Source: Blastocladiella emersonii ATCC 22665 (taxonomy: Eukaryota > Fungi > Blastocladiomycota). Taken from it: 64,000 nt of DNA. The DNA is taken from positions 3,596,001 through 3,660,000 of the forward strand of contig JANHCV010000001.1 of the NCBI GenBank assembly GCA_025594325.1. The letters run 5' to 3'. A program made the translations under genes and the position numbers. Under the pieces are notes generated by a model. That model saw only the letters and a list, made by a program, of their open reading frames with translations. It was not told the DNA's origin and searched no databases. This document shows positions 42,167 through 49,561 of this stretch, one piece after another. Each line of letters starts with the position of its first letter. Within the stretch, counting starts at the first letter, position 1.

Positions 42167-43161
42167 TTAGGCGAGGACGGCGAACGAGCGCTGGGGGAAG
42201 TGCGTCGCCTTCTTCTGGGCCTTGACGGTCTTGATCTTCTTCTCCGAGGCGGTCAGGGCGCGGCGGATGGCGCGGGTCTTCTTGGCGCGGAGGTCCGTGG
42301 GGATGTACTTCTTGCCAGCGTACTGCTCGCGGACGGCAGCCTTGGTCTGCTGGTTGATGACGGTCAGAACGCGGGCAATCGAGCGGCGGACGTTGCGGCT
42401 AAAGATTTTGGGGGTGGGGTGGGGTGGCGCAGTCAGCACTCTGGTCTGGCTCGCGCGGGTGGCGAGCGGCCGCGCAGGGTTTCCCCCGGCCTCAAGGAAA
42501 TCGCAGTGACGACGCCGCACGGCGAAAATCCGCCGCGCAGAGTTCCGCTGGGCCGAGAGGAAACGCAGCGTCGCCAGAGCGACGAGAAAAAGGTACACAC
42601 ATCTCGAGGGGCTTCTGCTGCGACTGGCCAGACTGCTGCTTGACGCGCATGGCGAGCAGGTCGCGGCGGAGCTCGTCCAGCTGCTTGTTAAGCTCGGCCT
42701 TGTTCTTGCCGCGGAGCTCGAAGGTCTTGATCAGGCTCTACGGGAGCAAGAACCAAGACGCAGCGAGCAGCACGCAGAACAAGGACGCAGAGTAGGGTGT
42801 AGGTTCAGAGGTCCGAGAGGGACGGGCGAGCAGCGATTCGGCGCAGTGCGAGCGAGCGAGGCGGATGGTTGTTGGTGGTCACCGTGCGAGTTTCAGCGAA
42901 ACGGCGGCGATTCGTGCAGTTTCGAGTGCACATGCGAGCGTGCGGGCGAGCGAGCGAGCGAGCGGCGAGCGATAATTCCATGGTGCCGATAGCATCGAGG
43001 TATACACGGAGGGCGTGCGGGTGGTGGTGGTGGTGGGGCGGCAGGACGGCGAGGTCAGCGTTCGTGTCGCAGACGGTGGCCGCGCGTTTTCCGCCGTCTT
43101 CGTCTTCGTCGACGGCGGCGTTCGTTCGCGGGAAGTTACATGGGCGGCAGAAACTTGCCAT
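42167..43161 (-). CDS. RPL35: 60S ribosomal protein uL29 (L35); exons 43159-43161 (ATG), 42601-42737, 42167-42398
   Basis: M|SLIKTFELRGKNKAELNKQLDELRRDLLAMRV...I|RNVRRSIARVLTVINQ...KKYIPTDLRAKKTRAIRRALT...FPQRSFAVLA. The ATG follows a pyrimidine tract. Intron 1 is GC-AG (421 nt); intron 2 is 202 nt. Confidence 0.93.
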
Positions 43162-43727
43162 GGTGATTTTGGGACCGACCGAAAAGAAGGAGGCGGGCCG
43201 AACAGCGTGGCGGCTCAGCGGTTGAGGCCTGGCGGCGGGTCGTTGCTTTCAAAGTAAAAATGCGCCACGCACGTGTGAGGTTCAGCCACTTCGAAGGCTG
43301 GCGACCGCCTCCATCAGAACTCCCGTCCTCCATCCCTGCTACCTTGCATGTTCGCTTCTGAGCCTTAAGTTGGAACAAGCACCGTGGAGCGTGAAGGCTA
43401 CTCCGCTGGCCACTCGTGGCAACAACCGCTCGCTGTGGTGGCGCGCCTCGACGCTGGCCATCCATCGGCCTTCAAATCGCTGCCGCACCGCCTTGCTGCC
43501 TCGAACGACACGCTGTACTCACCAACTTGGAGGTGCCAGCAACTCGCCGTTACTGCTGTGACCTACCGAGCTGAGAACCAAGCTGAGAACGCCTCACGGC
43601 CCCGGTTTGAGGATTCCTGCCCCGCGCGACTCACTCGAGTGACTCGAGCTCAGCTGCTGGTCGGCGTGTTCGAGTTGATCGCGGACTCCTCTCGCCCCCT
43701 TGTGGCGGCGTCGACGGGGTCACTTGC

Positions 43728-43755
43728 GACCGACCGACCGACCGACCGACCGACC
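43728..43755. repeat. (GACC)7 microsatellite
   Basis: Seven perfect GACC units, upstream of the H3-variant gene. Confidence 0.9.
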
Positions 43756-43941
43756 GCCGCCTCCAAGTGAGGCTGAGCCACCTCGTGGGTCAGTGGCGGC
43801 GCTCTGGCGCTGTGGCGCCGAGCGAACAAGAACCGGCCTGAGCCGCGCCGGGTCCTCGCTCCCTGAGTAACCCGCAACCCATGCAACTTGAACCTCTCAG
43901 CGAGCCGTAACTTGCTGCACTATCTTCATCCAACACTCAAC

Positions 43942-44911
43942 ATGTCCGTGCCCGATCTCATCTGCGAGCTTGCGCCGTCTTGGGAGTCGGCCTTGAGCGG
44001 GAGGAGCCGAAGCAACCAAGTACTGATGCTCGCGCGCGTCACTTTTCGTGTCTGTAAAACGCAGGGCGCGTACTAAGCAGACTGCCAAGTACGTTGATGT
44101 CCAAACACGATCACTCTTGAGCGATCCCTGACACTTTGTCCCTCCCTCGCAGGAAATCCACGGGCGGGAAGCAGTCCCGAGTCATGGAGGCCCGCAAGTC
44201 GCTGCGAAGCTCGGGCCTGGTCACGAGCGAACCGCGCTTGGCTGGGCAGCTCGCTGCTCGCAAGGGTCCCATCATCACTGGGTACGCGACTTGATCCTGC
44301 TCGCGTGTGCACGTAATCTCGAAGCTCACGCTCGAACCACACTAGGGCCGCGCACTTCAAGGCTAAGCACGCCAACAAGTCCGTGAAGCGGATCGTGCCG
44401 CGGGCTAACCCGGGCCAGAAGGTGCGGCTGCCCCGAGTTATGACCGATTCCGACTCCATCTCACCTTCTCGCGATCTGTAGGCCCTGATCCAGATCCGCG
44501 ACCTCCAGCGTTCGACGAACCTGCTGATCCCGCGACGGCCGTTCCAGTCCCTGATCCGTACGTCCTACCAGCTGTTTGCCGAGCGTCCGCTCGATCTCAC
44601 ACTCGCCCTCCCGCCACGAACAGGTGAAACAATGCAGGAAGCCCTCCATGCGCTTCGCGGCACGGGCGTGGATTTTCGCATCCAGGCCACCGCGCTCGAG
44701 GCGCTGCAGGAGGCGTCCGAGGCGTTCCTGACGTCGCTATTCGAGGACGGTACGCACGCTGATCCGACTCTTGAGCATCTCTCGGAACTACAACTCACGC
44801 TTCTCGTCTGTAGCCAACCACTGCGCGATCCACGCCAAGCGCGTCACCGTGTTCCCCAAGGACATGCAGCTTGCGCGCCGCCTCGCTGGTCCCGTCCCTG
44901 GCGCTTTGTGA
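43942..44911 (+). CDS. Divergent histone H3 variant (CenH3-like fold), 176 aa; exons 43942-43943, 44065-44088, 44153-44281, 44346-44421, 44482-44557, 44624-44749, 44814-44911
   Basis: Spliced: [176 protein letters not shown]. Six GT-AG introns, all in consistent phase; the ATG is split AT|G. Confidence 0.88.
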
Positions 44912-45349
44912 GCGACTCCGCCCACACCTCGTCCCTCCCTCCCTCCATGTACCACGATCGATCTCCTTCTCTGCTCCACACACGCGCACAACGTATACAC
45001 GCTTGCTGGCGCAGCGCCCAAGGCTCAAATTTGTCACTCGCGCAATACAGCAATGAACCCGTCTCATGCCCTGTGTTCGCTCAGCCTTGATTGTCGATCT
45101 AGTTCACGGAGCGTTTATCCCGCAGCGACGGATGGACGGAACAGCTATAGCTTCACCCGCGCGGGAGTCGCATGTATCGCCTACGCCAAGCGGAGTGACG
45201 CGGCTCTCGCCCGTTCGACGATGTCGACAACTGTACGACGCCGCTACGACCGATACCACGAGTACACCGCTCGCTCGAGCGCGCTTCCGAACCCGTCATC
45301 CTGTCCGTCCCGACCACGGCGACGGCCACAGCTGCGATGCCCGCGATCC

Positions 45350-46157
45350 CCGCTGTACTTCAACCCGGATCACGACTCGCCGTACTTCTCCAACCCGAGC
45401 GACCAATTGTGCGTGTTGCGAAACGGACGCTCTACGTCGGCCCCGAGCGAGCCGAGCTCGTGGTCCCCGGGGCCGCGCTGACAACCAACTCGCGAATGCT
45501 CGCGCACTGATTCAGCGCCGCGGCCAAGGGCGGCTTTCGCGAAGCCCATGCCCTCCATCTCGCCGCCCGTCTTTGCCGCGCTCGTCGAGCAGCTGCTTCT
45601 CCTGGGTGCTCGACGAGCGCGGCGTGGTCACCGCAGCCCAAGCACGTCCTCTGACTCGCCGTCGCGCGCTTGTACCTCGACCTGCCGCGCGCCGTCGACG
45701 CGTGCTTCGATCTCTCGACACCGCACATTCTCGACATTGAAGAGTTTGGCAAGTTGCCAGCCGCCCTGATCCGCGCGCTCATACGCCGCACCGACCTCGT
45801 CGGACTCGTCCACGTCGATGCGCTGATTCGCAGCGACCCGGACCTGCACGCTCGGCATGGCTCGAGCAACTCGCCCGGATCCCCGACTACGACCTGTTAC
45901 TCTTTACGACGGCCGTTGACTGCAGCGTGGACGCGGCCGATGGATCCGCAGCGGCTGCAGCGGTGATACCCCCCTTTGATCTCCTTGCTTCGCCGCCGCG
46001 TTATCGCACACACGCCGCTCCCGCCACGCGTGACCGCAACATTGAAGCCGTCCATCTGCCTAAAATCGTCACCGACGACGACCTGCGGTGGATCGCGCGG
46101 CGTGCGCAAGCGCGTGGTGGGCGAAGAGCGGCGCGCACGAGCCGCACTTGCGACTGA
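45350..46157 (+). pseudogene. Decayed BTB/POZ-BACK-like gene
   Basis: Fragments in shifting frames: YFSNPSDQLCVL / MLAH*FSAAAKGGFRE / PSISPPVFAALVEQL / LAVARLYLDLPRAVDACF / ILDIEEFGKLPAALIRALIRRTDL / WLEQL, in BTB-then-BACK order. In-frame TGA at 45508-45510 and several frameshifts. Confidence 0.5.
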
Positions 46158-47684: not shown

Positions 47685-49561
47685 TTACATGGGCTTCTGC
47701 ATCTTCTGCTGGAGCTCCTGGTAGTAGGCGAGCGACTTGCGGATCTGCGGGATCACGTCGCCCTCGAGCTGGGGCAGGACGCGGGCGAGGTGCTCGAACA
47801 GCGGGATCATGACGAACTGGATGAAGCCGACCTGGGCGCCGGGCTTGGTCACCTTGTCGCGGTCCATGAAGGGCGCGACGGGGAGGCCCTCGGCCTTCTC
47901 GCGGTCCGACTGCGCAAAGTACTCCTCGAGCAGGCAGTCGAGCCACGGCTCGGCCACGTCGGCGGGGCGCGCCTCGTTGCTGATGTCGGCGCACTTGACC
48001 ATCATGACGAGCAGCTGCATGCGGTGCTCCGGGTCCGTGAACGAGAAGTTGTCGGCCACCACCTTGAACTTGGCCATGATGTCGCCGTGCTTGGTCAGGT
48101 CCGTCGACAGCACACACCGCACAATGCCCTTGCGCGCCGCGTCGTACTCCTTGTCCGTCAGGTTCTTAAAGATGTTGCAGTCCTTGTTCCGGATGATCGT
48201 GAACCCGACCGCGCAGTGGTGGTTCTCGAGCGGCGACTGGTCGTTGTACACGGTCGCCAGCTCCGTGCGCGCGTTCACCTGGTACGCGTTGTTGAACCCG
48301 GGATGGTCAATGTCGTGGATGATGCTACGTGTTCGGGCGCGGTTGTGACGGGTCAGTGTGGTGTCGAGTCGCGGCGAGCGCGTCGATCAGTCGATGGCCG
48401 TGGCCAGCGTCCGTGCCCGTGCGCGCGGGAGTCGAGAGCGAGCATACCAGGCAACGAGGCCGATCAGGAGATCGATGGGCTCGACCTTGTCCATGATCTT
48501 GGTCACGTTCACGATGCCGTAGAACTAGAGCGACGAGCAGGAGAGCGAGGGTCAGCGTCGTCATCGAACCCAGTCCACACGGCCGCGCAGAAAAACGTAC
48601 CATCTGCGTGACGCAGAAGCAGTGGCGGAAGTTGTGGAACGGGTTGTTGTTGTAGTTGTCCTTGACCGTGTGCAGGAACCGCTTGAGCAGCGGCAGCTCG
48701 ATCTTGAACCGCTCAATGAGGCCGAGCTCGCTGAACATGTGCTCGATGAGGGCCACCATCTCGTTCTCCTCCCACTGCCAGTTGTTGAACGACGGCTGCT
48801 TGAGGTACGCCACCGTCTCGTCCGTGAACACGTACTTGGGCTGGTGCGTGAAGATGGGGTCGATCTTGGAGATGCGCTTGATCGTCTTGGACGTGACCTT
48901 GGTGGCGGGGAACTGCGACATGGTTAGGTTCTTCTCGGCCACCTAGACTCCACGACGACAACGATGGTCAGTGCTGTGGCTTCGGATCGCGGTCACAACA
49001 GCAGGAGCGTACCTCGACGCGCTTCTGGAACGAGACCAGCTGCTCGCGGAACGCCGAAATGTCGCGCAGCGGCTCGAGCTGCTTGGCAATGTCGTTGAGC
49101 TTGAGCTCGAGCGGCGCGAGCTTGCTCGCGATCTGCGCGTTCGTGTCCTTGGGCGAGGCTACTCGCGACGACGACAACGCTCGAGTCAGCATCCAGGCGG
49201 TGCAGCAGTGGCTATGGCCGGCGGCCACGGCGATCCACGCGTACCCGTCGCGCGCTTGACGCTAAGCACGTAGGGGTCCTTTTCCGTGTTGCCGGGGAGC
49301 AGCGGGCTCGGCGGGACCACGGTGCCGTCGGGCTTGGTCAGCTTGAAGACGACATCCTTGTCGTCGAGTGACAGCGACGCGAGGCTACACGCGAGCGGAG
49401 CGTGGTGAGCGGCATGGCCATCACCTCACCCCCACCGCGTACGGCGCGTACCTGTAGAGGATGGCGCGGACATCGTCGTTGGACGAGCCCGGGTACAGCT
49501 CAAAGGCCTCGGTCTTGTCGTCGAGCTTGACGTGGATGCGCGTGGGGCTCACTTTGGCCAT
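47685..49561 (-). CDS. PDE9-like cGMP phosphodiesterase; 6 exons
   Basis: Catalytic FHNFRHCFCVTQ, HDIDHPGFNN, ENHH, STD, KCADISNE, EEYFAQSDREK, AQVGFI. The N-terminal segment DGTVVPPSPLLPGNTEKDPY and KYVFTDETVAYLKQPSFNNWQWEENEM resemble animal PDE9A. Confidence 0.9.

Follow-up and report, generated by a model that had tools for sequence, protein, structure and literature searches.

Blastocladiella emersonii ATCC 22665 carries a seven-exon gene for a histone H3-family protein in which an H3-like N-terminus is joined to a histone fold with centromere-histone-like changes, and a gene of the same architecture is present in Catenaria anguillulae PL171. On balance, we favour the view that the gene encodes a functional, fast-evolving H3 variant which, judging from the databases, is restricted to the Blastocladiella–Catenaria lineage and is distinct from canonical H3 and most likely also from the classical centromeric H3 (CenH3). 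A variant of this composition, probably restricted to the Blastocladiales, appears to be undescribed in the literature searched; it was already present in databases without a description and probably also in one published tree. The gene had been picked out in a first-pass annotation of a 64,000-nt window (contig JANHCV010000001.1, positions 3,596,001–3,660,000; the coordinates below are those of the window), which suggested either an unusual CenH3 or a lineage-specific H3 variant.

Gene structure and annotation

In-silico splicing of the plus strand joins seven exons of 2, 24, 129, 76, 76, 126 and 98 nt into 531 coding nucleotides, which translate into 176 aa followed by a stop codon. The six introns (121, 64, 64, 60, 66 and 64 nt) are all bounded by GT..AG and contain branch motifs of the CT[CG]A[CT] type. 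The intact 176-aa H3-family protein encoded by seven exons and six canonical introns, as proposed in the first-pass annotation, was thus reproduced exactly. The features of the locus are as follows.

43942..43943, plus strand: coding part of exon 1, comprising the A and T of the start codon; donor GTCCGT; after splicing the ATG has a good context, cAAC-ATG-G
43944..44064, plus strand: intron 1, 121 nt, phase 2, interrupting the start codon; the homologous Catenaria intron has 167 nt
44065..44088, plus strand: exon 2, a 24-nt micro-exon with the G of ATG, ARTKQTA and part of K; Catenaria exon 2 also has 24 nt
44153..44281, plus strand: exon 3, 129 nt, encoding KSTGGK, both modules (ARKS and AARKG) and the lengthened part of the tail; free of Pfam domains, as a tail region should be
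44346..44421, plus strand: exon 4, 76 nt, the last part of the tail, as far as the Pro-Gly that precedes alphaN; from splicing and the intron comparison with Catenaria
44482..44557, plus strand: exon 5, 76 nt, alphaN and the start of alpha1, with Q68 kept and R49, R53 and K56 replaced; from the alignment to H3
44624..44749, plus strand: exon 6, 126 nt, covering the last part of alpha1, loop 1 including an insertion of 7 residues, and alpha2; Pfam Histone E = 3.9e-7
44814..44911, plus strand: exon 7, 98 nt, of which 44909-44911 are the stop codon, with T107A, C110 and H113 kept, alpha3 and the C-tail AGPVPGAL; Pfam Histone E = 3.7e-8
43881..43910, plus strand: upstream ATG of the GenBank model, a 9-codon uORF ending with TAA at 43908-43910 if transcribed and left unspliced; poor context
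47688..49561, minus strand: PDEase_I gene, PDE9-like, the synteny anchor; protein-level match to the Catenaria PDE

The GC content is 58% in the introns and 0.65, 0.49 and 0.825 at the first, second and third codon positions of the coding sequence. As anticipated, codon bias is weaker than in the neighbouring genes, with a third-position value (GC3) of 0.825 compared to 0.89–0.97 in the clear coding ORFs of the window; the low or stage-specific expression suggested from this bias in the first-pass annotation would be a prediction. The four sequencing runs listed for the locus, none of which is an RNA run, consist of genomic contigs that are colinear with the window and contain no joints. One short genomic contig stops at 44919 and runs on into CGTAATAACTTCGTATAGCAT, a loxP-like linker; this join is probably a mate-pair library artefact rather than biology. 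A microsatellite, (GACC)n/(CGAC)n with some six units (43727-43753), is located 190 bp upstream of the start, and the read layout skipped 43719-43765 as a repeat, at which reads seem to be cut.

The first-pass annotation regarded the gene as hidden, and it is indeed invisible to the ORF track. However, it is hidden from that track only, because the locus is already annotated in GenBank: a search with the frame of exon 6 returned a sole 100% match, the 184-aa hypothetical protein H9P43_001382 of B. emersonii ATCC 22665. The GenBank protein is identical to our spliced model except for exon 1, where it reads MQLEPLSEP+ARTK instead of M+ARTK. The GenBank exon 1 extends from 43881 to 43906, its ATG has C at both -3 and +4, and its donor, GTAACT at 43907, has C at +5, whereas the donor GTCCGT of our model keeps the C4-G5 of the other donors in the gene (GTACGT, GTACGC, GTGCGG). 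The start context, the donor and the split start common to the Catenaria orthologue (see below) make the M+ARTK start the better supported one, suggesting that the first exon of H9P43_001382 was mis-modelled and that its N-terminus is probably wrong. The genome annotation of B. emersonii was produced ab initio with funannotate, and RNA-seq is unmentioned (PMC9730499). Given that ab initio annotation missed the split start and 24-nt exon structure in Blastocladiella, comparable genes may have been modelled wrongly, or be missing, in the genomes of relatives, e.g. that of Allomyces.

A search for the histone 3' stem-loop (Rfam RF00032) gave no match with E <= 1 at positions 43000-46000, a region that includes 1 kb downstream of the gene. 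Such stem-loops have been reported at histone loci of Blastocladiomycota (preprint 10.64898/2026.10.14.759114), and the absence of one at the H3-variant gene fits a replication-independent variant.

An orthologue in Catenaria

An exhaustive phmmer run against 1.84 billion representatives yielded a sole match above the level of canonical H3 (P0136; 134 bits versus ~107 for H3), which aligns in one stretch with query positions 10-178 at 54% identity. This protein is ORZ39603.1 (A0A1Y2I0U5) of C. anguillulae PL171, labelled 'histone-fold-containing protein', and no characterisation of it was found in the literature searched. The two proteins are 56% identical overall and 63% in the fold, and have an identical stretch of 21 residues in common. 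ORZ39603.1 starts with MARTKVTAFKSQGGK, and its long tail contains AKKSVGGKGP; loop 1 is extended by 8 residues, Q68 is kept, and positions 84 and 107 are occupied by Val and Ala, respectively.

Threading ORZ39603.1 through the DNA of its locus defined exons of 2, 24, 123, 58, 76, 45, 84, 22 and 73 nt. The Catenaria start codon is split (AT/GT) as in Blastocladiella, exon 2 measures 24 nt in both genes, and all six Blastocladiella introns have a Catenaria counterpart of the same phase, five of them at the same alignment position and the remaining one, intron 3 in the tail, matching to within some three gapped columns. Furthermore, a PDEase_I gene is found 2.8 kb from the variant in Blastocladiella and 6 kb from it in Catenaria, with exons that are 63-89% identical at the protein level (at best 88.6% over 211 aa). 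Collectively, the split start, the 24-nt exon 2, the intron positions and phases and the PDE microsynteny indicate that the two genes are orthologues, and the preservation of this architecture in Catenaria, including the 2-nt coding start, is the best available support for the splice model. The Catenaria PDE gene (L001:15314-17079, plus strand) has an orientation relative to the variant opposite to that in Blastocladiella.

Both orthologues have the ARTK..KS.GGK start, a long tail and a second module, A-K-K-S..GGKGP in Catenaria. The Catenaria gene differs by two additional introns, and its product by a basic C-tail (GRRQPTH versus the hydrophobic AGPVPGAL) and another loop-1 sequence, in which the R-G present in loop 1 of the B. 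emersonii variant is not kept. The AT/G split start, the 24-nt exon 2, the six introns, the loop-1 extension, a 12-residue motif and the synteny are all common to what we propose as a Blastocladiales variant group. From this comparison, the H3-variant gene is real and conserved, and its predicted splice junctions rest on the Catenaria counterpart.

Histone fold and N-terminal tail

The Pfam Histone family (PF00125; cut-off 26.4 bits) matches exons 6 and 7 separately, with 30.8 and 34.1 bits, respectively. In a HMMER search against PDB sequences, residues 78-178 of H9P43_001382 align to residues 40-133 of H3 (108 bits, E = 4e-30), and residues 1-14 of the variant align with the H3 N-terminus as a separate domain, whereas the rest of the tail does not align. 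Thus, by PF00125 and its H3-type fold, the protein is a member of the H3 family. Pairwise alignment shows 56 of 93 residues of the fold to be identical to those of canonical H3 (60%), close to the ~58% estimated by hand in the first-pass annotation. The AF2 model has a mean pLDDT of 68, rising to ~90 in alpha2, and contains (mature numbering) alphaN at 75-87, a lengthened alpha1 at 94-112, loop 1 at 113-122, alpha2 at 123-153 and alpha3 at 158-168. The best Foldseek matches are all H3-type chains, namely, nucleosomal H3 and the H3 or H3/CENP-A-type chains of CENP-A nucleosome entries; the structure comparison resolves the H3 fold and no finer class, and the protein atlas label is 'histone H3/CSE4-like'.

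The residues of the H3-H3' four-helix bundle (C110, H113) and the H4-facing core of alpha2 and alpha3 are retained, as is K122. By contrast, both orthologues have other residues in place of R49, R53 and K56 of alphaN and of Y41 and R42, which immediately precede this helix. The C-tail AGPVPGAL of the B. emersonii protein displays a G-P-x-x-G-A-L pattern similar to the GPxGGLG ends of fungal and holozoan CenH3 entries.

The tail features noted initially are all present in the spliced protein. The first 14 residues are nearly those of canonical H3, with K4, K9, S10 and K14 kept and R8 changed to Lys; the tail is about 30 aa longer, as the Pro-Gly preceding alphaN occurs 30 residues later than in H3; exon 3 encodes the two K27-like modules, ARKS and AARKG; and the extended tail lacks the GVKKPH (K36) context. 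Between the two genera, A1, R2, T3, K4, T6, A7, K9, S10, G12, G13 and K14 are kept, and both tails also keep another A-[RK]-K module with Gly-Pro after it. Position 8 is not conserved, being Lys in Blastocladiella and Phe in Catenaria.

Relationship to CenH3

Centromeric H3 proteins are typically distinguished by a long loop 1, replacement of T107 by Ala, Cys or Ser, loss of Q68, a residue at position 84 that is usually Trp rather than Phe, and an N-terminal tail that cannot be aligned with that of H3. In the B. emersonii variant, loop 1 is 7 residues longer than in H3 in both the HMMER alignment, where it appears as a single 7-residue gap, and the pairwise alignment, and the retention of Q68, the change of F84 to Ile, T107A and the KDMQL motif were all found as the first-pass annotation had read them. 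Position 107 is Ala in both orthologues, as it also is in several H3 variants that do not look centromeric. The alpha1 glutamine (Q68/Q69), which is replaced by Ser, Ala or Thr in classical fungal CenH3 members, is present in both orthologues; position 84 is Ile in Blastocladiella and Val in Catenaria, not Trp, and the chytrid CenH3 P0340 has Val as well. The N-terminal tail does align with H3, over residues 1-14.

A different Catenaria protein, CANG003656, has been assigned to CenH3 (120 aa, with PFTRLVRE, a long loop 1 and YRWQAS; van Hooff et al. 2017, PMC5579357, CenpA.fa), and displays the classical fungal CenH3 pattern of replaced Q68, W84 and LVHLFEDANLC (PMC5579357). Similarly, Allomyces AMAC008895, with PFARVVRD and FRWQSS, conforms to the classical fungal pattern and was assigned to CenpA; both assignments are computational (PMC5579357). 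The assignment to CenH3 of a protein other than ORZ39603.1 in Catenaria, along with the Allomyces one, favours a lineage-specific variant over a classical CenH3 orthologue, and, by descent, B. emersonii probably possesses a separate classical CenH3 too. The H3 tree of the same study includes three Catenaria entries, with CANG003656 in the CenpA cluster, CANG006043 among canonical H3, and CANG007225 elsewhere, on a branch of 0.46 outside the CenpA cluster where it is joined to a Giardia sequence with a support of 2 (PMC5579357). Our guess is that CANG007225 is probably the ORZ39603.1 protein. The literature searched yielded no publication dealing with either CenH3 or H3 variants in Blastocladiomycota; the supplement of van Hooff et al. 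(2017) was the only relevant material. A CenH3 with a tail module like that of H3 would have precedents, given that ARKSTGG is found in Cyclocybe P0304, which is named CSE4, and in a Cryptococcus CenpA entry.

In a search with a profile built from the pair, both orthologues scored ~290 bits and the next single-domain proteins at most 148 bits; the proteins below the pair were protist-type H3 variants, canonical H3 and a few classical fungal CenH3, and there was no match from Allomyces in this search. In a maximum likelihood tree of 45 H3-family proteins, the two orthologues form a clade (support 97/94, stem 0.66), and the classical fungal CenH3 of Entophlyctis, two agaricomycetes and two further relatives form another (93/89), which does not include the pair. 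The tree does not fix the position of the pair among the 45 proteins: forcing it together with the classical CenH3 clade costs only 0.46 lnL (AU p = 0.48), so that a CenH3 origin is neither supported nor rejected. The histone-fold phylogeny called for at the outset thus places the pair outside the classical fungal CenH3 clade, although joining it to that clade is not rejected. Of the two possibilities raised in the first-pass annotation, it is accordingly the Catenaria orthologue and the separate Catenaria CenH3, not the tree, that favour the lineage-specific variant. The pair has diverged to an unusual degree: fold identity to H3 is 60% for the variant and ~78% for the two named classical fungal CenH3 compared (P0340 and P0304).

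Database names are of limited help in this family. Full-length searches against NCBI and UniRef are swamped by well over 100 entries (P0002-P0120) that are 270-320 aa long and bear the name 'histone H3-like centromeric protein CSE4/CENH3/cid'. Judging from their length and doubled bit scores, these entries appear to be fused tandem models of canonical H3; therefore, CSE4/CENH3 names were not used as evidence, and on such fused models they would mislead CenH3 calling by best hit. In addition, many metagenomic H3 (P0296-P0344) combine a full canonical ARTKQTARKSTGG tail with 2-9 residues inserted in loop 1, Leu or Ile at position 84 and, in some cases, T107A, showing that loop-1 insertion, change of F84 and T107A are not specific to CenH3.

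Alternative explanations

The long loop 1, T107A, the divergent C-tail and the R-G in loop 1 resemble the features by which CenH3 are called and, as such, speak against a separate variant. The protein could instead be a functional histone of the centromere, or one associated with it, serving as the only CenH3 of B. emersonii or as an additional CenH3 paralogue of the Blastocladiales; it would then have kept the ARTK end and the K9-S10-K14 module ever since Blastocladiella and Catenaria diverged. Second CenH3 paralogues do occur in barley, cowpea, C. elegans and Drosophila. This possibility, which we consider real but rather unlikely, draws on the 7-residue extension of loop 1, T107A and the loss of the alphaN arginines, as well as on the lack of a 3' stem-loop and the fast divergence (63% identity between the genera, 60% to H3), and the AU test allows a clade with the classical CenH3 (p = 0.48). 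The hydrophobic, Gly-rich C-tail is also reminiscent of the GPxGGLG tails of CenH3 entries, but neither this tail nor the loop-1 R-G is kept in Catenaria. The first 14 residues, which align with H3, set the protein apart from most CenH3, even if entries filed as CenH3 can hold ARKSTGG modules, and both orthologues retain Q68 and have Ile or Val at position 84. Most pertinently, Catenaria has the orthologue plus a separate protein of the classical CenH3 pattern, and a CenH3-pattern protein exists in Allomyces too.

A further possibility is that the locus is a decaying, non-functional H3 copy with relic exons, or an annotation artefact. A GC3 below that of neighbouring genes and an unusual 2-nt coding piece at the start might be taken as signs of decay, but the frame is open across seven exons and six canonical introns, the exons are more GC-rich than the introns, microsynteny is preserved, and the split-ATG architecture and the fold residues critical for the nucleosome are kept in another genus, which makes this explanation very improbable; the conserved architecture likewise speaks against a pseudogene. 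Two established H3 classes were also considered and rejected: an H3.3-like replacement histone, because the protein bears no likeness to H3.3 across residues 85-92 and its fold has diverged far too much, and a canonical replication-dependent H3, because of the 60% fold identity and the lack of an RF00032 match.

Predicted function and implications

As a lineage-specific H3 variant, the protein would pair with H4 and, in a replication-independent manner, take the place of H3 in some of the nucleosomes. A dedicated chaperone might recognise its altered loop 1/alpha2 surface, as happens with the CENP-A targeting domain. In CENP-A nucleosomes, the loss of alphaN contacts with the DNA ends results in looser terminal DNA, and the lost alphaN arginines of the variant may loosen the DNA ends likewise. 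Removal of the initiator Met would expose a free, H3-like ARTK end and the K9-S10-K14 module. With the same free end and module as H3, the variant could be acted upon by H3-tail enzymes and readers, for which its tail could thus have kept docking sites; the additional methylation sites proposed in the first-pass annotation would likewise be a prediction.

To our knowledge, histone H3 variants are few, each with a defined job, and a variant of early-diverging fungi that mixes a CenH3-like fold with an H3-type N-terminus would provide a new case for the study of variant origins. If it is centromeric, it would represent a CenH3 that retains canonical H3 tail marks. Centromeric nucleosomes could then be direct targets of the H3-tail machinery, in place of the H3 nucleosomes beside them; this machinery includes phosphorylation of T3 as a mark for the chromosomal passenger complex, phosphorylation of S10 by Aurora-type kinases, and modification of K4 and K9. 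If it is not centromeric, long loop 1 and T107A are unreliable markers of CenH3. Should B. emersonii have no classical CenH3, the variant would be its centromeric histone.

Comparison with known H3-type histones

Variants of the CCOR002899 type from Conidiobolus coronatus, an early-diverging fungus with additional H3 variants, were assigned to the CenpA group (van Hooff et al. 2017, PMC5579357) and are similar to the Blastocladiales proteins in starting with ARTKQTARKSTGG, keeping Q68, having Ala107 and occurring beside a classical CenH3. However, they have no long loop 1, are absent among the phmmer and profile matches listed and show no sign of orthology with the Blastocladiales pair.

With canonical H3, the variant has in common the nearly identical first 14 residues, the fold itself, and C110, H113 and K122. 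It differs in that the tail is 30 residues longer and without GVKKPH (K36), loop 1 is 7 residues longer, 40% of the fold residues are changed, and the gene contains six introns and no 3' stem-loop.

The variant is similar to CenH3/CENP-A/Cse4 proteins (Entophlyctis P0340, Cyclocybe P0304, Catenaria CANG003656) in its longer loop 1 and Ala107, and to the classical fungal CenH3 in its altered alphaN basic residues and non-H3 C-tail; an intron-containing gene lacking the histone stem-loop, as in B. emersonii, is a further likeness to the CenH3 family, and some classical fungal members have an ARKSTGG tail. In contrast to the variant, with its Q68 and Ile84, the classical fungal CenH3 have Q68 replaced by Ala, Ser or Thr and mostly W84, and they form a 93/89 clade of their own from which the variant is absent, with Catenaria encoding both kinds of protein.
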